From: Octopus sinensis
Taxonomy: Eukaryota
Direction: 5' to 3'
Length of the DNA: 64,000 nucleotides
Assembly: GCF_006345805.1 (NCBI RefSeq)
Contig: NC_043012.1
Coordinates: 32,426,001-32,490,000, forward strand
Positions 17,228 to 46,634 of the stretch are shown here, one piece after another. Under the pieces are notes generated by a model. That model did no database searches. It was given only the letters and a program-made list of their open reading frames with translations, and was not told where the DNA came from. The position numbers and the translations under genes are program-made. Position 1 is the stretch's first letter; the number at the start of each line of letters is the position of its first letter.

Positions 17228-19297
17228 TCATCATCATCATCATCATCGTTTAACGTCCGCTTTCCGCGCTAGCACGGGTTGGACGGTTCGACCGGGTCTG
17301 GGAAGCCAGGGGCCGCTCCAGGCTCCAGTCTGAATCTGGCAGAGTTTCTACGGCTGGATGCCCTTCCTAACGCCAACCACTCCGTGAGTGGATTGGGTGC
17401 TTTTTACGTGCCACCTGCACAGGGGCCGGAGGGTCCGGCATCGTCACGATCGGTTCGAGCATTTTAACGTGTCAGCGGCACGGGGGCAACGAGGTCCGGG
17501 GTACTTTGGGGATTGGGGTACTTTGGGGATCCAGGGTACTTTGGGGATCCGGGGTACTTAGAATGGGTAGGGGGTATGTGGAATTGCTGCAGAAAGCAGC
17601 CCGGGTCTTTGTAGTCACAGCATATCTCCAGAGATCTCGGTCCTTCGCCATTGCCTCAGTGAGGCCCAATGCTCTGAGGTCATGCTTGACCACCTCATCC
17701 CATGTCTTCCTGGGTCTACCTCTCCCCTGATACCTTCAACTGTTTGGGAGTGGCACTTCTTCACACATCTCTCTTCATCCATCCGCAGCACATGACCATA
17801 CCATCGCAAGCGTCGCTCTTGCACACCACTCTGATGCTTCTTATATCCAGCATTTCTCTCAGGATACTTACACTCTGTTTTGCGTGCACACTGACACTAC
17901 ACATCCAGCGGATCATGCTAGCTTCATTTCTTTCAAGTCTACGCATGTCTTCTGCAGTCACAGCCCATGTTTCATTACCGTGAAGCATGGCAGTTCGCAC
18001 ACATGCATCATACAATCTACCTTTTGCTCTGAGGGAGAGACCTTTTGTTGCCAGTAGGGGTAGGAGCTTTCTGAACTTTGCCCAGGCTATTCGTATTCTA
18101 GTGGTGATACTCTCTGTGCATCCACCTCCGCTACTAACTTGGTCACCCAGGTAGCGGAAACTATCAACTACTTCTAGTTTCTCTCCCTGGAGTGTGATGG
18201 AATCTGTTTTCTGAGTGTCTGTTGTGTCTATTGTCCCTGTGCATCTGCCGCACATGAAAGCTATCTTATCTGTTAATTTCCCTTGTGTCCATAACTTACA
18301 TTGGGTGCATCTTATGGAGTTTCTACCTGTACCTTTCCTACAGGTTGAGCAGGGCCACCTACCCGAGGGGATGTGTGTTGAGTACCTCTTGCTGCTTACT
18401 AATACTTTGGTCTTTGCTACATTTATTCTAAGGCCCTTTGATTCCAACCCTTGCTTCCACACCCGAAATTTCTCTTCTAGTTCCGGTAGTGATTCTGCTA
18501 TGAGAGCTAGGTCATCGGCATAGAGGAGCTCCCAGGGGCATCCCGTTTTGAATTCCTCTGTTATTGCCTGAAGGACTATGATGAATAAAAGGGGACTGAG
18601 GGCTGAGCCCTGGTGCACACCTACTTCTACCCGGAATTCTTCACTATATTCGTTGCCAATCCTAACCTTGCTGACAGCCTCTCTGTATAGAGCCTGTACA
18701 GCCCTTATTAGCCATTCTTCAATCTCAGTTTCCGCATCGACCACCAGATAAGGGAACGGGGAACCCTGTCAAAGGCTTTCTCCAAGTCTACAAAGCTATG
18801 TAGAGGGGTTTATCTTTAGCTAGGTACTTCTCCTGCAGTTGTCGGACCAGGAATATAGCATCAGTGGTGCTTCTACCTGGTACAAAACCGAACTGCATTT
18901 CATCTAAACAAATTCTCTCCCTAATGAGATTGGTTATGACCTTCTCTGAGACCTTCATCACCTGGTCCAACAGTTTGATACCTCTGTTATTATTTCTATC
19001 TAGAGCATCACCCTTACCCTTGTAGCAGTTGACTATGGTGCTGCTGCACCAGTCATTGGGTATGACTCCATTGTGAACTACCTGGTTTACAATGCGGGTG
19101 ACTATGGCATAGCCCACATAGCCAGCTGTTTTAAGCATCTCAGCAGTGATTCCTGATAGGCCAGGGGCTTTGCCTGGTTTCATATCCTTAATTGCCTTAT
19201 CTACAAGGGAGCTGTCTATTCGGGTAGCTGGTCCCTCTACTGGGTCAACATTTGGCAGGCTCTCCTCCTCCCATTCATTCTCCTCATTCAGCAGTCT
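17228..19297 (-). mobile_element. 5'-truncated RTE-clade LINE (RT and C-terminus, 3' UTR, (GAT)n tail)
   Basis: ORF pieces KAPGLSG...QFGFVPGRSTTDAIF, LEKAFDRVP, GVHQGSALSPLLF, LLYADDL, FRYLG, RRLRWYGHV and RGRPRKTW are separated by small indels. The element ends in the (CAT)n tract on the + strand. Confidence 0.93.
17497..17560. repeat. ~18-bp minisatellite (GGGGTACTTTGGGGATCC)n inside the RTE 3' region
   Basis: About four tandem units are visible. Confidence 0.8.
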
Positions 19298-21404: not shown

Positions 21405-22398
21405 AATGTCTGACAGCTAAAGGGAAGACACAGATTGTTGCAAATCTCACAGAAGGCTTTATGTGGGAGAATTAGCCCAAGAGCTTGGTCAGGATACAAG
21501 AACATTGAAAGCGTATGTGGAAAACCCCATCACCAAACCAAGGCAAGATAAAGGTATGAGAAGACGTGCATACCAACGTGACATCCGAAAAATAGGTAGA
21601 TAAGTAAGAAAAGACCTCGGTAGTACAAATGCTGCCATATTTGAAAGTGCTGGGGTTGCTCCTTTGTCCAGATACACCCAATGTAGGAGGATCCTTAAAG
21701 AGACAGCCAAAAGTGCTAAGTGCATCGCGAGACCCATCCTAAGCAAGAACCACAAAGAGAAGCGTATTGATTGGGCAGAGAAGTACATGAAGATCAATTT
21801 CCAAGATGTCCTCTTCACGGATGAGGCCAGAGCTTTGCTGGATGGCTCCGACGGATGCGCCAAAGTATGAGTACCTCTTGGAGCCTCTTGCCTGCATCGT
21901 ATTTGGCATCAACAAGGAGGTGGTGATGTCATGTTTTGAGTGGGAAGCATAGGAAATGAACTTGTCAGGCCTTTCCAAGTGCCAGGTGTCAAACTCACCA
22001 GCAACTCCTACACCGTGTTTCTGGGGAAGCATTTTGCAGCATGGGTAGATGATCTGCCACTCTTACGTCGATGGCAATTGATTTTTATGCATGACAACGC
22101 TTCTTCGCATTCAGCCAAGGGTACCATTTCATACCTCGCAACTCTGGGAATCGCAGGCCAATCACTCATGATTTGGCCTCTCTGTTCTCCTGGCCTAAAC
22201 TCTATGGAACAGCTCTGGTCGATCTTCAAGAGGAAAGTGTATGAAGGAGATATCCAGTTTTCATCAAGGAAGCTCTGTGGGGAAAGATCAAAACAGTTGC
22301 TGATACCATAACATCTCAGATTAGTTGGCTAACAGCTTCTGTGGACAAAAGACTGTTTGATATCATTTCTAAACAAGGAAGTTACATAGACAAATAAA
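21405..22398 (+). pseudogene. Tc1-like DD37E (TRT-type) transposase pseudogene
   Basis: VLFTDE, FMHDNASSH and WPLCSPGLNSMEQLW. Counted 37 residues between the second D and the E. Frameshifts and stops are present; TIRs were not identified. Confidence 0.82.
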
Positions 22399-38079: not shown

Positions 38080-39689
38080 TCCAAAAGAGATTGATTTTTC
38101 ATCTGCTTCACGGCATGAAACTAGTCCTACGCACCACCCCTTCAAAGCCCTACTCCCCGGGACTTTCGAACAACTTGCATGTTTATAACGACACGCCTTC
38201 GTATTGAATACACCAGCATGTAAATCAATGGAGTTGTGCCTTTTTTTTTTTACCGTCATTCTCTTTGACTGTGGATGGGTGGGACTGCAGATTTGGATCA
38301 TCAATTCTTGGGTAAAGTTGTATTTATTCCTATTTATTTGACTCTAAAACGAAGGCACAGTGAATTCGGTGAAATGATTTCGACGCAGAATACAAGAAAA
38401 ATGCCACGAAAATGGAAACGGAAGTAACGAAAGACAACTCTCATTACATCAGATGTTTTCTTAAAATATTCTGGAAATACGAATACAAAATAATATAGAA
38501 AAGGGAAGAGTACAAAAACACTTACATTAGTCAATACACATTACTGAAATCATACTTATTTTGAAGTAATAAATCATAATTTTGCACAAGTTTACAGAAT
38601 AACTACAAAATATTTGCAGCAATGAGAGTTGTCTTCCATAAAATCCGCTTTCATCCTCAAAACATTTTCTACGAGTATTCGGAGGAGGTTATGGGATAAA
38701 AAATAAATATATTTTATTACTGCCAATTAATATATTTATTATATAAAATAAATAAATAACTCGGACTCAAGAAACTGAGAATATATTCTGTTTCGTGGGG
38801 TTTTTCTGTGCCAACTCTTTAATAATAAACACTGAGAACCAAACAGGTTTATAAACTGAAAAGGGTTAAAAGGGTCCAAACAGATCTCATTTACCCTTCA
38901 ATTGCCAAATATTAAATAGTAATAACATATTACAAGGGGTTTAATCGTAAGAATCAATTACTATCTCCTAACAGAAGAAAATAGACGGTAATGAATCACA
39001 TTCGGCTGGACAACAGTTCTTGACAATCATTTACTCAATAATAGAAATAAATAAAATACTGAAAAGTTACAAATTTCTCTAACATTGGAAGATCAAAGTA
39101 TTGGTTTATAGACTGTCTCCATTTCAAGGATGGGCAGTTCCTATTTCCACATGGTCTGTTTTACTATATTTTTTCCTCAAAAAGAAATAAAAATCTGATC
39201 TATACTTTGATGTTGGAAGTAAATATTTGTCTCGTTCCATCCTATTTAGAGTTTAAATGTGAGCAATGAGACAGACGGTATCGATAAAACGGGTGTTGAT
39301 GATGAGGAAATGCAATACAAGTGAGGCTGACGCAATTTCGTAGACGGGAAAAATAAACCAAAATAGTTTCAGGATAATTATGAGAAAACTTGGAATTTTA
39401 AAAGGAAATCTTATTTAAGATTTGACTTACCAAATGCCGATAACGTTAAAAAACAAAACATGGATTGCTGAATGTGATAATCCATGATGAACAAATGTCA
39501 TCTTAGAAGTTATAAAAGCTGGTTGGAAGAAGGTGAATCAGGGCCGCTCTTCCCGTGCCATTCCGTTTTGAGGTCGAACGACGAAGCGGTGCACTCAAGG
39601 GACGTAATGCAAAGAACGTTAGGCGAAAACTATGGTAACACATTCGGAACATTATTTAAAATTGTTTAACTTCTTAGAATCGTAGGATC

Positions 39690-39703
39690 TTTATATATAT
39701 ATA

Positions 39704-39783
<80 letters not shown>

Positions 39784-39787
39784 TGAT
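39690..39787. repeat. (TA)n followed by (TAA)n microsatellite, the tail of a minus-strand CR1 end
   Basis: Seen directly; followed by GAATTATTGTATACAGTGCTC. Confidence 0.9.
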
Positions 39788-40337
39788 GAATTATTGTATA
39801 CAGTGCTCTTTTGAACGGCACATGTCAGCACAATTTCTAGCTAACTAAACACGGATCTTTTCCTTTAGATAGACAGAATTCAACCCAATTTCTAGCTAAC
39901 TAAACAATTTGAAACTTCGTATACTGGTAGAATGTGTCAAAAGAAAACATTATTTTCACTTGGCTTTTTTGATAAATTTGTAATTTGTAAGTTTAACGTA
40001 GTTTAATTCTTCGAATTTTAACCAATGAATCGCCAGTATTTGAGCTCAAATCATTTTCTGCGTCAAAAATACTGGTAGAATGTGTCAAAATAAAACATTT
40101 TTTTTCTCTTGGCTTTCTTGATAAAATTGTAATTCGTTTGTTTAACGTAGTTTAATTTTTCGAATAGACTGATTTTGTGGTGTATGCGAGAGATTCGAAA
40201 TAAAGGCACCTGTCTTCCCTTCGCTCAGACGGAGACCCTTCAGCGGTAATGGATCTTTTAACACAGCCTGACCCGAACACTAGAAATAGCAGTTGCTTCT
40301 TCCAACAACATGCTGACCCCGTCTTACTCGCTCGGCG

Positions 40338-40751
40338 GACCTCGATCGAAAAGGCAGAACCCTGCCCTCCCTGCACGAGCGTCACTGCTGCTCCATTCGG
40401 TCAGCTCCCCAGCTGCTGACGTCACCCACACGCCACCCTGATCTTAAAGATCACAATCTCTCTACTCCATGTCGTTGTCCACCATCCAACCGGGAGGGGC
40501 GCCTTGCGCGTCGAGATCTTCTCAAGCTAGGCACCTCGTTCTCCTCCTCTCCACAATCGTCGTCCGACGAGCGACAATCCTGCAAAGGTCCAATATGTGT
40601 CGTAGCATTCCATCCACGGAGATGTTGTTTCTGGAATTGACCGCCGTCACCGTTCACGACCTCGATCGAAAAGATAGAAGTCTGCCCTCCCTGCGCGCGC
40701 GTAACTGCTCCCCCTTCCGGTCAGCTCCCCAGCTGCTAATGTCATCCCACA
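40338..40751. repeat. GC-rich ~90-bp direct repeat with a 320-bp period
   Basis: GACCTCGATCGAAAA...GGTCAGCTCCCCAGCTGCT at 40338 and 40658. Confidence 0.85.
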
Positions 40752-41415
40752 GATTTATTAGAAGAAAATAAGAATTTAAGATTAAAGTAAAAAATAAATA
40801 ACACTGAAGCAAAATAACACCAAATATACAGTGCATGTGTTTTTATTGGCTAAACTGGCAAAATGACTATTCCTAAATACAACAATATCTGTTTCAATAC
40901 ACGATTTCACATCAAGAATCTTGCAAAACAAATATATAAACGTAAGAATTTAAAATATTATCGGAGATGTACTTGCAAAGCGAGTGACTTGATCTGAGAT
41001 CGTGTGCTGGAAAAGAAAACAATTGCAGCGTGAAATGTGTTTATAAGCCATTTTAAGAAACACACAAAAACCGTTAGATTCACTTGAACATTTAAATTTA
41101 ATTTGTCAAAATATTTTCGTCACTTTGAGACCACTGACAAAACTTCGTGCTTCATCTATTTTTTTTTTAATTATAACTTTTATATAATTTGTAAACTTGT
41201 TGCTTGGCGAATCGGATTGTGATGATAATTATGTTCCGTTTAGGTTTCCATACATGTTGTTGGTTGCCGATTAATGTTTTTCAAATATTTCTACATGTCG
41301 AGGCGCGTCCTTTGACTTTGTTACCAACGGATTTCCTAAAGCTTCGCCGATACTTTGCTGTCAGCTTTTGTGCTTATTTCAGGATAATGTTTTAACAAAT
41401 TTTCATTACTTAGCG

Positions 41416-41778
41416 ATGTGGAATTCGTCGAGTCGACTTAATAATGGCAGATCCATACAGTTTTGGAGACAAAATCGAAGATTACAATGTATTGAATCTG
41501 CTCGGCAAAGGAGGCTTTGCATGTGTTTACCGTGCCAAATGTATGAGAACCGGACAAGATGTAGCTATAAAAATGATCGACAAGAAACTGATGAAAGCTG
41601 CCGATATGGTGACGAGGGTTCGGAAAGAAGTGGAGATCCATTCTCGTATGAAACATCCAGCAGTGTTGGAACTCTATACTTACTTCGAGGACAAAAATTA
41701 TGTCTATCTTGTCCTGGAGTTGTGTCATCGGGGCGAGTTGCATCGCTATCTAAAAGCATACAACAAAGTTCTTTCTGA
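41416..41778 (+). promoter_or_regulatory. Out-of-frame upstream ORF overlapping the PLK4 start (120 aa)
   Basis: ATG at 41416 (G at -3) is 28 nt upstream of the PLK4 ATG, so it is out of frame, and it stays open to 41778. A second minimal uORF ATG-TTT-TAA lies at 41387-41395. The transcript start is unknown. Confidence 0.45.
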
Positions 41779-44476
41779 GGAAGAAGCTGTCGTATTTATG
41801 GATCAAATTATTAGCGGAATGATTTATTTACATTCCCACAATATTTTGCATCGTGATCTAACTCTGGCTAATCTCTTACTTACTCGCGAAATGGATGTGA
41901 AGATCGCAGATTTTGGCCTGGCCACTCAACTCCAAATGCCTGATGAAAAACACTTTACTATGTGTGGAACACCGAATTACATATCTCCGGAGGTTGCTAT
42001 GCGTACATCACATGGATTAGAAGCAGATGTCTGGTCCCTTGGATGTATGTTATACACCTTCCTTGTTGGAAACCCTCCATTTGATACAGAAGCGGTTAAA
42101 AGCACGCTAAACCGGGTTATTATGGTGGAATACGACTTGCCCAATTACCTTTCTCCGGAGGCCAAAGATCTGATCCAGTTACTATTACGGAAGGATCCGA
42201 AAGAAAGAATAGCACTCTCTGAAATTCCCGATCATCCATTTATGAAGAAGAGGTATCCTTTGAGCTTTAGACATCGGTGCCACCAGAATTGTCACGAAGC
42301 TTCGATAGATAGTGGTAAAGGTACGATGAATACAGAGACAAACAGCTGGAGCCGTAACATTAGTCATTCAACGAATGGTTCCAGAAGCCGGCCCCTTCTA
42401 GGATTACCCATCCAGGAAATACAAAGTTACATCTCAGAAAAAGACGATTACAGTTCGGAATTCTTTCCAGAAAATACCAATGTGTTTCCACATAAATTTC
42501 AACAAGGCAAATATTTGGATATTCACCCGGCTGCTATTTCTGCTTCGTCTACCCAACATCACAACCGAACAAATCCAAAAGTCGGCATCCAGACTGCCTT
42601 CCACCATGGAAGTTCTACTAAACCACCTCTCCAGTTAGAATCTCACCAACATAAGGTATTGTTGAACAAAAATCATATTCCAAATTCATATAATCATCAA
42701 ATAAGTAGACATGATTGTAATTATAATAAGTCTAATAACGTTCTTTGGGATCGACCTTTTCACGAAATGGCGGATTGTAATGTAGACCCTTCCAAAATTC
42801 CAGTAAATTCCAAAAGTACCTGTAGCCTTTCATGCAGTGGATCTTTATGTAGTAACAATGCTAACTTGTTATCAAGCGATCCGAGTTCGAGCAGTCAACC
42901 AAACTTATCTGATCAGAGCAGTAGCAACTCCTTACACATGCAGCCCGGTGTTGGCATTGCCTCGGATACCTCGTCAGAAGGTAGCAGTCCAGATATAGCC
43001 CTCAGGAAGGAAGGGCATGTAGGGACTCTATCAAAAATGGCATTTGGTAAAAACACTAAATTAAAAGAAGAGCCTACTCTTTCTCTGAAGAAAAGAGAGT
43101 GTGCTGGAGAAGATTGTGATAGTGGTTTGAAGACTGCAAATTCTTCAAACCAGATTAAGTATTCAACATCAGTAAGCAATGATCCAACTACTAAAATTAC
43201 AACTTCATCAAAAAACCGATCCAGCCATAATGCTGAATTACCCCCAAGTGCCATTTCAGCCCTTTCTTCAATACGATTACGACCCATTAGACAACGTACT
43301 AAGACAGCTTTTGTGAGCATCCTTGACAGTGGAGATGTGTGTTTGGAATTTGTAAAGAATCGAAGCAAAGAGGAATACATAGCAGAGATATTCTTGATTT
43401 CTCAGGATGGTCACAATGTGACTATATACCAAGCTAACAATGGACAAAAATTTGACCCCAATCAAGTCCCCCCTCCCCATTCAGCAAATGTCATTAAAAA
43501 AACATTTCATTTGCAATCTCTTCCTGAGAAATACCTGAAGAAATACCAGTATGCATCAAAATTTGTTAATCTTGTCAGATCAAAGACTCCAAAAGTGACG
43601 CTGTACACCACAAAGGCAAAATGTATGTTGATGGAGAATTATCCTGAGCCTGATTTTGAAGTGGATTTTTATGATGGTGCTAAATTTACTATTTCATCTT
43701 CGGGTATCAGAATCATCGAAAACAATGGTACTTCTCTTCTTTTGGAATCTGGTGAAACAGGTCAGTGCTTTAGTAGTGAAACACAAAAACTGTTAGCTTA
43801 TGTAAAAGATTGTCGTCAACGTTGTATTGAGTTAGAACAAGTGATAAGTACAGTTGAGCTAAGTTGTAAGACAGTAGATAACCTTTTCCCAATAATAATT
43901 GGACGGAAACCCAATGTACTTGTTGCTAATGCTAAAACAGATGACCATGATATAGTCAAGAGTGCCAAAGACAGTACCGGTCCCACTATTGTCCCTAGTG
44001 AACATCCTACAGATGTAGAGGGTTCCTTAGATGGAACTTACGCAAACAGTCCGTTGATAACTACACAAAACTCAACTTGTAACAGTTCTCTCCATAGAAA
44101 ATCCCCATTCAACAGGCCAGCCAGCCCTTCTGTTACCACTGATCTCACGTCCAGTGCATCTTCCAATCACAGTAGCTGCAACAATTCCTCTCACAGCAAC
44201 ACACACAGCAATAGAATAGTGCGACAGATTTTCGTTCCAAATGTTGGTTGGTCGTTCCAGTATATGAATGGGGAGATTTGGATAAAGTTTAACGACGGCA
44301 CCCAACTCGGTGTGAAGCCTTCAGGACAAACATTTAAGTACGTAGATGTTGATTGTAAAATGGCCAAGTACCAGAAAACAGATGTACTACCAGGTTTTGT
44401 TAAAAAGAAATTAGAAACAGTTCCATTTGTGGTTAAAAGTTTGTTGTCAGATAACAGAATGCCTGAGATTCCATAA
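41444..44476 (+). CDS. PLK4: Serine/threonine-protein kinase PLK4 (SAK), single coding exon, 1010 aa
   Basis: Uninterrupted 3033-nt ORF. N-terminus [42 protein letters not shown] and [12 protein letters not shown] match the PLK4 kinase. Cryptic polo box motifs LRPIRQRTK and [19 protein letters not shown], and PB3 motif IFVPNVGW...FNDGTQL, are present. Strong start context ataATGg. Confidence 0.96.
42308..42325 (+). other. PLK4 beta-TrCP/Slimb phosphodegron DSGKGT
   Basis: gat agt ggt aaa ggt acg = DSGKGT just after the kinase domain, the position of the DSGxxT degron in human and fly PLK4. Confidence 0.8.
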
Positions 44477-44558
44477 CACATTATTCTTCATCTTTCATCT
44501 TTTACATTTGGTATATTTGTTTATATATATATATATATATATATTTATTATATAGAAG

Positions 44559-44611
44559 GAGCTTCTACAGGACTAGTACTGTTTCATTCAAGAGAAATCT
44601 TCAGGAAGCTC
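44559..44611 (-). ncRNA. Second, inverted copy of the same hammerhead on the minus strand
   Basis: Exact reverse complement of 44614-44666, with a 7-bp stem I and an identical core. Confidence 0.65.
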
Positions 44612-44668
44612 AGGAGCTTCCTGAAGATTTCTCTTGAATGAAACAGTACTAGTCCTGTAGAAGCTCCT
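44612..44668 (+). ncRNA. Type I hammerhead ribozyme (Penelope-like element type), sense to PLK4
   Basis: Stem I AGGAGCTTC (44612-20) pairs with GAAGCTCCT (44660-68). Core CTGAAGA 44621-27. Stem II TTC-tctt-GAA with a U.U closing pair. GAAA 44640-43. Stem III ACAG/CTGT with loop TACTAGTC. Cleavage triplet GTA, cut predicted after 44659. Confidence 0.72.
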
Positions 44669-44675
44669 TCTATAT

Positions 44676-44681
44676 AATAAA
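44676..44681 (+). terminator. First AATAAA downstream of the PLK4 stop (candidate poly(A) signal)
   Basis: No AATAAA or ATTAAA seen between 44477 and 44675. The hexamer lies inside the right palindrome arm. Confidence 0.3.
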
Positions 44682-46634
44682 TTAATTTTACTCTGCTATG
44701 TATTGAGTACCTTACTTACTGTGGTTAACCCCGGATCAACCCGGGACCTACATATATATATATATATTATATATATATGTATGTATGTATATATAAAGGT
44801 GTGTGTATGTTATCTGACTTGTCACAACAAATTCTATTAATATTTCAAATTTCATGTGGTTTCTTACTCTTCCTTATAGTTTTTCTTCATTTGTTTGCTT
44901 GACATCTGCTAGTTTGCTGAATTTTGATCTTTTCTCACATATTTTAATCATGAAATTTTAATTCAACTTCTCTCACACCACGCAATTTTTCAAACCTTTT
45001 TGTATATTTATTTATTAACATTCCTCTGTCTCCACTCTATCCTCCATCCACCTTCTCTCACTCTTATCATTTTTCTCCTCTACTTTTAACTTTTGCAAAA
45101 GAATAGCTTCTTTTTTTTTTAAAAAAAAAAGACAGAAAGATTGTTTTGTCCCTGTTTGCTGCTCTTCCAAACTAAAAAAAATTCATTTTTGCAGTCTTCC
45201 CTTTTTCAATGTTAAACCATTTTATATGTTGGTTTTAATGTCTCCAGTATTTATTCATACATTTTTATCTTAATTTAATTACCATTTCAAAATCATACCA
45301 ATTAACTCTGCATAGAGAATGGTATGGTGAGAGTAAACTTCACTTTGTCTGCATGCATTAGGGATAAATAAAGGAGACTAACAAATTAATAGAAACATTA
45401 TTTCTAAATCTTTCAAAGAGAGATTACTAATAAATTACCTTCAATTATACAATAGACACATCAGGAGATCTTAATTAGAAGACATTGTTTAAAAGTATAA
45501 GAAAACAAAAGCAATGAGAAATCCCTTTTTTTTGTGTGTGTATTTTTTCTATTTGCTCCTCATTTAATTGCTGATGGTTTTTTTTTTGTTTTTGTTTTCC
45601 ATGCTTTATACACCCTTTTTGTCTGCATAATTATCCCCATTTATAGTTTATCACTTAACGACTATTTTGAGATTGATTTTTCTTAATGAGAAAAGCTCTT
45701 CATCGATTTCTATTCCTGGCCAAATTATCACTGATTCCCAGCCCTTCTTCCCACACCACCACCACCGCTCTTATCTGCACCCCCACCCACCCAAAAGCAA
45801 ACTTGTTCACAACTAGAGTTTCCAACCACTCATTGCCGAACATTCACACACAATGCTGTACATACCAAGAATCGATTAACCAAACAACTTCATCAACACT
45901 ATGTGGACTCCACATCATTATTTTATTTATTTTTTACACCCCTCCACAATGATGCACTCAACACACCTGCGCACACTAACATCTTTGTTTTATTATTATC
46001 ATCATCATCATCATCACCATCATAATCATCAACTATTGGCTTCATTTTGCATACCTCTTTCTCTTCCTTTTTTTCCATTTCCACTTTGTTCATTCCGTCT
46101 TGTACATATTCTTTTGTTATTGGTCTTTTGACCTTAAACCAAACAGAACTGACTGACACTTAGACACTTGTATAACGACTAGGATCAGGTATGTTCTGTA
46201 TAAAACTGTTTTTCTACTGAGACGTGTATAGCTGCATTTCTGTGTGTGAGTGTGTGTATGCACGTGCATTCTGAATGTGTTTCAAATTTGTTTACTCTCA
46301 AATATAATTTTTGTATTAAAAGGTTTAAAAATATATAAAACTGCAACATAACAAATTTTATATTATTTTATATTCTATCTATATTATCGGTATTAGTTAC
46401 ATTACAGTTGTTGTTTATATATTTTTTATTATCATCAGTGCCATTGTTATTTTTTTTTCATAATCATCATGGTAATTATTAATGATAATGATTATATTAA
46501 GTCAATACTACTATCAATATTAGTAGTAATGCTACAATTACTATTCTTATTGTTAATGTTATTATTAATATTTATATAGTCTTATTTTTATTTAATCATA
46601 TCAGAGTCAATAAAATATATACCAGTAATATGCT

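Follow-up and report, generated by a model that had tools for sequence, protein, structure and literature searches.

Just 3′ of the PLK4 coding sequence of Octopus sinensis lies a palindrome with a hammerhead-like motif on each strand, raising the question of whether it acts as a switch in the 3′ UTR of the gene, as a first-pass annotation had proposed, or is the trace of a transposable element with little consequence for its neighbor. We addressed this within a 64-kb window, the whole stretch of DNA that was analyzed, and all coordinates are positions in that window. Judged by its coding sequence, the PLK4 open reading frame (ORF) upstream of the hairpin is a genuine gene. It has the Pfam domains Pkinase, Plk4_PB1, and Plk4_PB2, its protein has an exact match on O. 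sinensis chromosome CM016874.1, and the PLK4 proteins of O. vulgaris and O. bimaculoides fall in the same 90% protein cluster. The gene and the poly(A) hexamers 3′ of it are as follows.

41444–44476, + strand: PLK4 coding sequence, a single uninterrupted, intronless ORF of 1010 aa with the stop codon TAA at 44474–44476

44676–44681, + strand: AATAAA brought by the insertion, the first poly(A) hexamer 3′ of the PLK4 stop, inside the base of the hairpin stem

45367–45434, + strand: two AATAAA hexamers (45367 and 45429), the first that are common with O. vulgaris and O. bimaculoides

A sequence scan found neither AATAAA nor ATTAAA between the PLK4 stop and the inserted element, in agreement with the earlier observation that the hexamer at 44676 is the first after the stop and lies inside the palindrome. 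The matching AATAAA hexamers are at +747 and +809 after the PLK4 stop in O. vulgaris and at +658 and +671 in O. bimaculoides, and poly(A) hexamers conserved in all three species start ~650–950 nt after the stop. The pair at 45367–45434 likely marks the ancestral PLK4 poly(A) region, and because no hexamer comes earlier than the insertion and the conserved ones start so far downstream, the insertion plausibly lies within the PLK4 3′ UTR. Octopod Logan contigs (~92% identical) were considered as PLK4 transcripts and rejected, being collinear with the O. bimaculoides genome; they end inside the (TA)n tract and are thus uninformative on both the mRNA end and the presence of the insertion.

The palindrome begins 67 nt 3′ of the PLK4 stop and spans 140 bases, and its two 69-nt arms are 100% complementary and 2 nt apart. 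Its perfect 69-bp-arm structure, reported by the first-pass annotation, was recovered by inverted-repeat analysis, and as RNA it folds with a free energy of −117.6 kcal/mol (z = −24 relative to shuffles).

44543–44611, − strand: left arm, an inverted copy of the terminal 69 nt of the element, antisense to the + strand ribozyme motif

44612–44613, no strand: junction AG, the center of the palindrome, coinciding with the 5′ edge of + strand helix I

44614–44682, + strand: right arm, the sense copy of the terminal 69 nt of the element

Perfect palindromes beside long (TA)n tracts assemble poorly, assembly trouble from the inverted structures of Penelope-like elements (PLEs) is reported (PMC8557442), and this palindrome is known from a single O. 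sinensis assembly built from long reads, so it could in principle be an assembly or polishing artifact. We consider this very improbable; both flanks stay collinear with the orthologous sequence of two other species, as those of a missed-adapter fold-back would not, 68 bp of the insert are unique and non-palindromic, and the arms hold a specific ribozyme motif and not copied local sequence.

The hammerhead-like motifs occupy much of the two arms, and the parts of the + strand motif can be assigned individually.

44612–44668, + strand: type I hammerhead-like motif, matching in sequence and by descriptor, with cleavage predicted after A44659

44612–44620 with 44660–44668, + strand: helix I, 9 bp

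44621–44627, + strand: core CUGAAGA

44628–44639, + strand: helix II, consisting of U.U, U-A, U-A, and C-G, with loop UCUU

44640–44642, + strand: GAA (G12–A14)

44643–44658, + strand: helix III, ACAG/CUGU, with loop UACUAGUC

44659, + strand: A17

44611–44559, − strand: mirror hammerhead motif in the left arm, with a 7-bp helix I, a cut predicted after 44566, and a descriptor match

On both strands, the invariant hammerhead core is complete (C3 U4 G5 A6 N7 G8 A9, G12 A13 A14, A15.1-U16.1, and an H17 that is not G); on the + strand, the invariant pair is A44643-U44658 and the site is A44659. Three helices surround the core with their open ends in helix I, and ACTAGT and AGTACT overlap within loop 3, as had been described. 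That the left arm is an exact antisense copy with a − strand hammerhead motif of its own was likewise borne out, by the 100% complementarity and the descriptor match. Helix II is marginal, with three Watson-Crick pairs plus a U.U, and the G10.1-C11.1 pair, which is highly conserved in hammerheads (PMC4209133), is missing, U44628 standing opposite U44639.

We searched with our own hammerhead descriptor, which was relaxed after the motif had been seen and tolerates a 10.1/11.1 mismatch, and these two motifs are its only matches in the 64-kb window. The relaxed descriptor gives 0.04 matches per 64-kb window in 100 dinucleotide-preserving shuffles, and a helix I of at least 8 bp together with a helix III of at least 4 bp was found in none of the 100 shuffles; so complete a hammerhead motif is far beyond chance. 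The Rfam hammerhead families, a search that the first-pass annotation had recommended, gave no match to the window at gathering score, nor to a 351-nt segment and the 69-nt arm even at E ≤ 10. On the 351 nt, Rfam returned only microRNA-precursor families, and we do not count these matches as support for a microRNA, as they are generic to long hairpins and far below gathering scores.

In the isolated arm, the hammerhead structure proposed earlier has a free energy of −15.1 kcal/mol versus −16.3 kcal/mol for the minimum free energy (MFE) structure, in which the core AAGA pairs with the loop UCUU in place of the proposed helix II. Helix III and its loop are near-palindromic, with 14 of the 16 positions self-complementary, and an isolated-arm homodimer reaches −45.0 kcal/mol, compared with 2 × −16.3 kcal/mol for two single arms, through an extended helix III. 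The right arm, which had been described as a complete type I hammerhead, thus has the core bases and the three helices, but lacks the G10.1-C11.1 pair, an Rfam match, and an MFE fold of the expected shape. On these sequence features, we regard the motif as an atypical hammerhead and a candidate ribozyme.

Coleoids have extensive ADAR editing of their RNA, and the switch model supposes two alternating folds of a PLK4 read-through RNA. In the first, a hairpin would mask both the ribozyme and the poly(A) signal and draw in ADAR or Dicer; in the second, the hammerhead would be active and cut off the tail, and the switching would tune PLK4 dose. Such a model can draw on the complete hammerhead core with all three helices, the AATAAA located in the stem, and the probable position in the PLK4 3′ UTR, yet the folding data make it highly unlikely. 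When the hammerhead helices are enforced, the ensemble loses 75.7 kcal/mol of stability relative to the free one (P ~5e-54), and in prefix folding the right arm zips onto the left once ~17 nt have emerged, before the 3′ half of the ribozyme exists. In a read-through transcript of either strand, the antisense arm would be made first and the ribozyme arm would zip onto it, so the hammerhead would be held in a 69-bp duplex with no switch action. Helix II is weak without G10.1-C11.1, the isolated-arm MFE sequesters core bases, Rfam lends no support, and in vitro cleavage is poor even for genuine metazoan PLE hammerheads (PMC4209133). The element is also absent in O. vulgaris and O. bimaculoides and is hence not a conserved regulator. 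Together, the energy gap, the prefix folding, the helix II defect, and the private nature of the insertion leave the proposed 3′ UTR switch unsupported.

Comparison with the sister species shows how the palindrome and the sequence 3′ of it are set into the locus.

44520–44544, no strand: left part of the (TA)n microsatellite, the insertion target, whose border with the element can be placed to within a few bases

44683–44750, + strand: one-sided insertion tail of 68 bp, absent from O. vulgaris and O. bimaculoides

44752–44797, no strand: right (TA)n/(TATG)n part of the microsatellite, where the alignment with O. vulgaris and O. bimaculoides resumes

At the orthologous sites of both O. vulgaris and O. 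bimaculoides, (TA)n runs uninterrupted where 44555–44748 sits in O. sinensis, and the O. vulgaris flanks are 98.0% and 97.2% identical to those of O. sinensis. Because the hairpin and the 68-bp tail are both missing from the sister-species (TA)n sites, we interpret them as a young, lineage-specific insertion of ~208 bp, and the 100% identity of the arms, set against the 2–3% divergence between O. sinensis and O. vulgaris, fits a recent event. The first-pass annotation had named a private insertion as a finding that would count against its switch, and a private insertion is what the orthologous sites reveal; the simpler option that it also offered, a recent neutral PLE insertion, is favored by the empty (TA)n sites and the PLE-like anatomy. 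A target-site duplication is unreadable within (TA)n.

The reading we prefer, with reasonable though not full confidence, is that the ~208 bp at 44543–44750 are a young O. sinensis-specific insertion of a PLE, or of a non-autonomous element mobilized by one, in which the hammerhead is locked in a duplex and does not switch. PLE insertions are recognized by strong 5′ truncation, an adjacent inverted 5′-truncated copy, a tail at one end, and (TA)n targets, and PLE hammerheads sit in pLTRs near the 3′ end (PMC8557442); opposite-strand dual hammerheads 100–700 bp apart have been ascribed to truncated PLEs (PMC4209133). Two of these signatures are present here, the (TA)n target and the 5′-truncated copy with an adjacent inverted 5′-truncated copy. 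The element would then consist of two head-to-head copies of its last 69 nt, with their 3′ ends outward and the 68-bp tail on the right only, and in each copy a small type I hammerhead motif native to the element.

The Poseidon protein is able to cleave AT-rich DNA and to extend both of its strands, and its reverse transcription has two internal starts, which lie within an AC-rich stem-loop ~85–92 nt 3′ of the hammerhead cut site (PMC11167929). At the octopus locus, a GIY-YIG endonuclease would have cut the AT-rich repeat, both DNA strands would have acted as primers, a short template RNA being reverse-transcribed from two different internal positions (44682 and 44750), and the two cDNAs would have been joined at the template 5′ end with 2 extra bases, giving a perfect palindrome. 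The tail terminates in a CCCGG-AUCAAC-CCGGG stem-loop (44730–44745) followed by ACCUAC and extends to 91 nt 3′ of the predicted cut site, so that the position of the stem-loop resembles the Poseidon geometry. One-sided PLE tails, which reflect the two reverse-transcription start sites, are usually 30–40 bp, whereas the extension here (44683–44750) is 68 bp. For both copies to be truncated at exactly the same base, either the template RNA must have been short or a template jump must have occurred, a step that we assume. The hallmarks of PLE hammerheads are a helix II of 6–8 bp, an extra base after A9, G10.1-C11.1, a helix I of 4–5 bp, and palindromic 15.2-16.2 and loop 3 (PMC4209133); the octopus helix III and its loop are palindromic, but helix II, G10.1-C11.1, and helix I depart from this pattern.

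We looked for relatives of the insert in several ways. Arm, tail, and left flank were each searched against the 64-kb window by blastn-short, which returned only (TA)n matches and no further copies of arm or tail. A tblastn search of the window with Poseidon_Ac (from the PMC11167929 supplement) found no PLE ORF, which is what a truncated copy of 208 bp would lead one to expect, and reverse transcriptase (RT) ORFs at 17761–19183 (− strand) were rejected as a parent PLE, as they look like a LINE. Exact or degenerate arm and tail patterns had 0 matches in JGI metagenome contigs, and two open antisense-frame peptides of arm plus tail yielded no protein-search candidates; these negatives say little, since neither collection is expected to contain cephalopod repeats. 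Within the searches made, neither a parent PLE nor a second copy of arm or tail was found.

A real insertion that is not a PLE event is also conceivable, although we think it unlikely. Either a fragile (TA)n break captured a cDNA or DNA fragment of a hammerhead-bearing repeat, with fold-back during repair synthesis, or the hairpin belongs intrinsically to a − strand element resembling a SINE or a retrozyme. Long (TA)n tracts are break-prone, the hammerhead fits the PLE hallmarks poorly, and no PLE ORF lies nearby in the 64-kb window. The − strand of the tail contains GGGTTGATCC, which is near to a tRNA B box and recalls hammerhead-bearing tRNA-derived SINEs, such as Schistosoma Sm-alpha; however, ARAGORN detected no tRNA in the tail, the Rfam E-value search gave no tRNA match, and a (TA)n target combined with outward 3′ ends, a tail on one side, and a terminal stem-loop 91 nt from the cut points specifically to a PLE. 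We also rejected a DNA transposon of the MITE or foldback kind; the 208-bp insert starts with ATTTATTATATAG... and finishes with ...CCCGGGACCTAC, which are not mutual inverted repeats, a lack of terminal repeats that makes a MITE unlikely, and there is no second copy in the window.

As regards PLK4, the presumptive PLE copy is probably an ordinary transposable-element insertion and probably neutral, or else mildly deleterious, and nothing shows a regulatory role for it. Generic consequences would be limited to the presence, in the likely 3′ UTR, of a long double-stranded RNA (dsRNA) stem and one additional, buried AAUAAA. 3′ UTR inverted repeats have known effects in other animals, and the hairpin might affect PLK4 as dsRNA or as a new poly(A) site and not as a ribozyme, through ADAR editing, Dicer processing, nuclear retention, or alternative polyadenylation, with species-specific PLK4 expression as the result. 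The perfect 69-bp duplex (−117.6 kcal/mol), which Rfam microRNA-precursor models score only as a generic long hairpin, lies in a probable 3′ UTR and is consistent with such effects. We nevertheless judge them doubtful, as a self-complementary tract of (UA)n (~57 units in O. vulgaris) already occupied the ancestral site and the insertion is young and unconserved. Fainter still is the prospect that the O. sinensis PLK4 3′ UTR is altered by hyper-editing or dicing of the duplex or by use of the AAUAAA, and that editing frees the weak hammerhead. If it held, heavy A-to-I editing of the antisense arm would loosen the stem enough for the hammerhead to cut, and PLK4 mRNA processing would differ between O. 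sinensis and O. vulgaris through a transposable-element ribozyme.

The interest of the locus lies more in the element. A dated insertion with an empty site in the sister species provides a clean example of an architecture, with head-to-head copies, a tail on one side, and a (TA)n target, that recent biochemistry ascribes to PLE proteins priming both DNA strands, and it suggests activity of a hammerhead-bearing retroelement in the O. sinensis lineage since its split from O. vulgaris. For the study of PLK4, its value is at most that of a natural allele in which the effect of a perfect 69-bp 3′ UTR hairpin could be examined.

Several known systems resemble this locus in part. Inverted transposable-element pairs in 3′ UTRs, such as inverted Alu, form ADAR or Dicer substrates, and the octopus locus similarly has two inverted element copies that would form a long intramolecular duplex, although its arms are just 69 bp, perfectly matched, and 2 nt apart. 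The discontinuous Clec2 hammerhead of mammalian 3′ UTRs (Martick et al. 2008, cited in PMC4209133) is likewise a 3′ UTR motif whose cleavage would remove the poly(A) tail; the Clec2 ribozyme is conserved across species and active, whereas the octopus motif is lineage-private, borne by a transposable element, and masked by its antisense copy. The Schistosoma Sm-alpha SINE hammerhead (Ferbeyre et al. 1998, also cited in PMC4209133) is a type I hammerhead in a short retroposon, and the B-box-like motif of the octopus tail adds to the likeness; that motif, however, lies on the strand opposite the adjacent ribozyme, and a tRNA-like fold was not detected in the octopus tail.

Metazoan non-LTR retrozymes (Cervera and De la Pena 2020, PMC7229834; Li et al. 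2026, bioRxiv 10.64898/2026.07.22.740005) share with the insert a small, non-coding, AT-rich constitution and type I hammerheads that have a short or unstable palindromic helix III and act as dimers, and they have been proposed as non-autonomous PLE derivatives. Retrozymes form direct tandem repeats of ~170–400 bp that give circular RNAs, whereas the octopus locus has one inverted pair of 69-nt fragments, and the direct or tandem copies by which retrozymes are recognized were not found in the 64-kb window.

The closest match is to truncated or inverted PLE insertions that carry hammerhead motifs (Cervera and De la Pena 2014, PMC4209133; Craig et al. 2021, PMC8557442; Frangieh et al. 2024, PMC11167929). 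In contrast to these, the octopus insert yielded no RT/GIY-YIG ORF or parent copy in the searches, its helix II is 3 bp with a U.U and its helix I is 9 bp where PLE hammerheads have a long helix II with G10.1-C11.1, and its copies are 2 nt and not 100–700 bp apart, with a tail of 68 bp and not 30–40 bp. It nonetheless shares with PLE insertions a (TA)n target and extreme 5′ truncation, an adjacent inverted copy with a one-sided extension and an opposite-strand hammerhead pair, a near-end type I hammerhead with a palindromic helix III and loop, as in dimer-type hammerheads (PMC4209133), and an element end that falls in a stem-loop ~90 nt 3′ of the cut site.

The window is part of chromosome CM016874.1 in the Octopus sinensis assembly GCA_006345805.1, and its PLK4 gene is one uninterrupted frame of 1010 aa with Pkinase, Plk4_PB1, and Plk4_PB2 domains; the 90% cluster of this protein includes the annotated PLK4 of O. 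vulgaris and O. bimaculoides. A palindrome starts 67 nt past the stop codon, with two 69-nt arms that are 100% complementary and separated by AG, and its RNA is predicted to form one hairpin of -117.6 kcal/mol (z = -24 versus shuffles). The right arm contains a hammerhead motif, which recurs in the left arm on the minus strand with a helix I of 7 bp.

41444-44476, plus strand: PLK4 open reading frame
44474-44476, plus strand: PLK4 stop codon, TAA
44543-44611 and 44614-44682: left and right arms of the palindrome
44612-20 with 44660-68, plus strand: helix I, AGGAGCUUC with GAAGCUCCU (right-arm sequence)
44621-27, plus strand: hammerhead core, CUGAAGA
44628-39, plus strand: helix II (U.U, U-A, U-A, C-G) with loop UCUU
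44640-42, plus strand: G12-A14, GAA
44643-58, plus strand: helix III, ACAG/CUGU, with loop UACUAGUC
44659, plus strand: predicted cleavage site A17
44683-44750: tail of the insertion, 68 bp, TAATTTTACTC...CCCGGGACCTAC

The sequence details in the first-pass annotation were all correct on checking, among them the AATAAA (44676) and the overlap of ACTAGT with AGTACT in loop 3. We searched with a descriptor specifying CUGANGA, GAAA, A15.1-U16.1, a base other than G at H17, and minimum lengths of 4 bp for helix I and 3 bp for helices II and III (helix II with an optional 10.1/11.1 mismatch), and the two arm motifs were its only matches in the 64-kb window. One hundred dinucleotide-preserving shuffles gave 0.04 matches per window, none with helices of the observed length, and a core-only search (CUGANGA, 7-17 nt, GAAA) found two further places in the window; a chance match within a random palindrome is thus ruled out. 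Helix III and its loop are self-complementary at 14/16 positions, and two isolated arms are predicted to dimerize through them at -45.0 kcal/mol (versus 2 x -16.3); hammerheads of metazoans and of Penelope-like elements (PLEs) are known to have this dimer-type architecture (PMC4209133).

The motif is an atypical, degenerate-looking type I hammerhead, present in inverted duplicate. The search with Rfam hammerhead models proposed in the first-pass annotation returned zero matches, both at gathering score over the whole window and at E<=10 with 351 nt or the isolated arm as query. Whereas the G10.1-C11.1 pair is highly conserved in hammerheads, according to Cervera and De la Pena (PMC4209133), the octopus motif has U.U at this position, and its helix II has three Watson-Crick pairs only. 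In the MFE fold of the isolated arm (-16.3 kcal/mol), loop 2 pairs with core bases A6-A9 and helix II is unformed; the three-helix structure reaches -15.1 kcal/mol and 2.4% of the ensemble. Its predicted catalytic competence is probably low, and poor cleavage in vitro is described even for metazoan PLE hammerheads of canonical form (PMC4209133).

Orthologous loci were found by exact-protein look-up in O. vulgaris (L002), O. bimaculoides (L003), and three Logan contigs of another octopod (L004-L006), which end within the (TA)n tract and give no information on the insertion. The PLK4 coding sequence (~1010 aa) is intronless in all four octopods (window 41444-44476; L002 3001-6033; L003 3001-6051; L004 866-3895). 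In other animals PLK4 has several exons, which suggests an old retrogene replacement in octopods or else wholesale intron loss.

The O. vulgaris locus aligns to the window at 98.0% up to 44554 and 97.2% from 44749 onward, and O. bimaculoides at 95.6% and 90.8% on the two flanks. Between these flanks both species have a plain (TA)n microsatellite; the hairpin, whose presence in other cephalopods the first-pass annotation had asked about, is lacking, as is the tail. This comparison indicates that palindrome and tail are a single ~208-bp insertion into (TA)n, which dates from after the split between O. sinensis and O. vulgaris or from shortly before it, and the 100% arm identity fits a young insertion. 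The tract (L002 6080-6195; L003 6097-6140; window 44520-44544 and 44752-44797) varies strongly in length: O. vulgaris has ~57 units, against ~20 units with interruptions in O. bimaculoides. In the ancestor, the PLK4 3' flank already included a long (UA)n tract able to pair with itself. Just upstream of PLK4 (39685-41161) lies another insertion that is lineage-specific and sits at a TA microsatellite, a ~1.5-kb block with a (TA)n/(ATA)n tract at its start (39692-39781) and internal ~95-bp repeats (39921-40016 with 40069-40165; 40338-40430 with 40658-40751). Both O. sinensis and O. vulgaris carry this block, but in O. bimaculoides ~51 bp stand in its place, and the Logan octopod contigs lack it; no hammerhead core was found in it.

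Judged from sequence, the insertion site probably lies within the PLK4 3' UTR. No AATAAA or ATTAAA occurs between the stop codon and the insertion site, the insertion's own AATAAA is the sole hexamer before 45367, and the first poly(A) hexamers common to all three species are at 45367/45429 (O. vulgaris +747/+809; O. bimaculoides +658/+671). The first-pass annotation proposed that this 3' UTR could switch between a masking hairpin and an active hammerhead. Enforcing the three hammerhead helices in the 140-nt RNA costs 75.7 kcal/mol versus the free ensemble (P about 5e-54), and in prefix folding, 15 of the first 17 nt of the right arm are already paired with their left-arm mirror bases, so the helix I 5' strand and core would be sequestered before the ribozyme 3' half is transcribed. 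The antisense arm is always transcribed first, on either strand, and an antisense transcript would be equally sequestered because the 3' ends of the copies face outward. These models indicate that the two folds are not alternative states, thermodynamically or in simple kinetics, and ribozyme release would need massive unwinding or editing. Given the folding results and the absence of the insertion from the sister species, the switch is not supported. The long perfect dsRNA stem or the buried AAUAAA may have a generic effect on PLK4 mRNA in O. sinensis, this one species.

As to the kind of element, a MITE was rejected because the full insert is without terminal inverted repeats. Neither other copies of arm or tail nor a parent PLE ORF (tblastn, Poseidon_Ac) was found in the 64-kb window; arm and tail patterns had 0 matches in JGI metagenome contigs, and peptides from arm and tail gave no protein-search candidates, in collections not expected to hold cephalopod repeats. 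With neither parent nor second copy retrieved, it is the anatomy of the insert that points to PLE membership. Elsewhere in the window, two adjoining ORFs of 327 and 131 aa (17761-19183, minus strand) match RVT_1, carry a YADD motif, and appear to be remnants of a LINE-type reverse transcriptase rather than of a PLE; ORFs at 21664-22311 (plus strand) resemble, by eye from translation, a Tc1/mariner-type transposase fragment. In the tail, GGTCCCGGGTTGATCCGGGGTTAACC (44722-44749, minus strand) looks like the T-arm or B box of a tRNA, one base short; ARAGORN found no tRNA-like structure there, and the region may instead be a PLE reverse-transcription-start stem-loop.

The insert is a young and probably neutral retroelement insertion, most likely of PLE type, a fresh instance of an already known element type. 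It consists of two head-to-head copies with 3' ends outward, the left ending 23 nt past the cut site and the right at 91 nt, where a CCCGG-AUCAAC-CCGGG stem-loop and ACCUAC directly precede its end. Priming of cDNA synthesis by both strands of the cut target would be expected to yield this head-to-head layout. The exactly shared inner end and 2-nt junction suggest that both cDNAs extended as far as the 5' end of a short template, and a template jump may then have linked them. PLEs prefer (TA)n targets, insert as strongly 5'-truncated copies with an inverted, likewise 5'-truncated copy alongside and an extension on a single side, and carry hammerheads in their pLTRs close to the 3' end (PMC8557442). 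The octopus insert likewise has 5'-truncated inverted copies, a (TA)n target, a hammerhead motif of atypical form, and an extension on one side, which is 68 bp long against the usual 30-40 bp. Its hammerheads lie on opposite strands, as in the dual hammerheads ascribed to truncated PLEs (PMC4209133). One PLE protein cleaves AT-rich DNA, extends both DNA strands, and reverse transcribes from two internal starts, which lie in an AC-rich stem-loop ~85-92 nt 3' of the hammerhead cut (PMC11167929); the right end of the octopus insert falls within this range.
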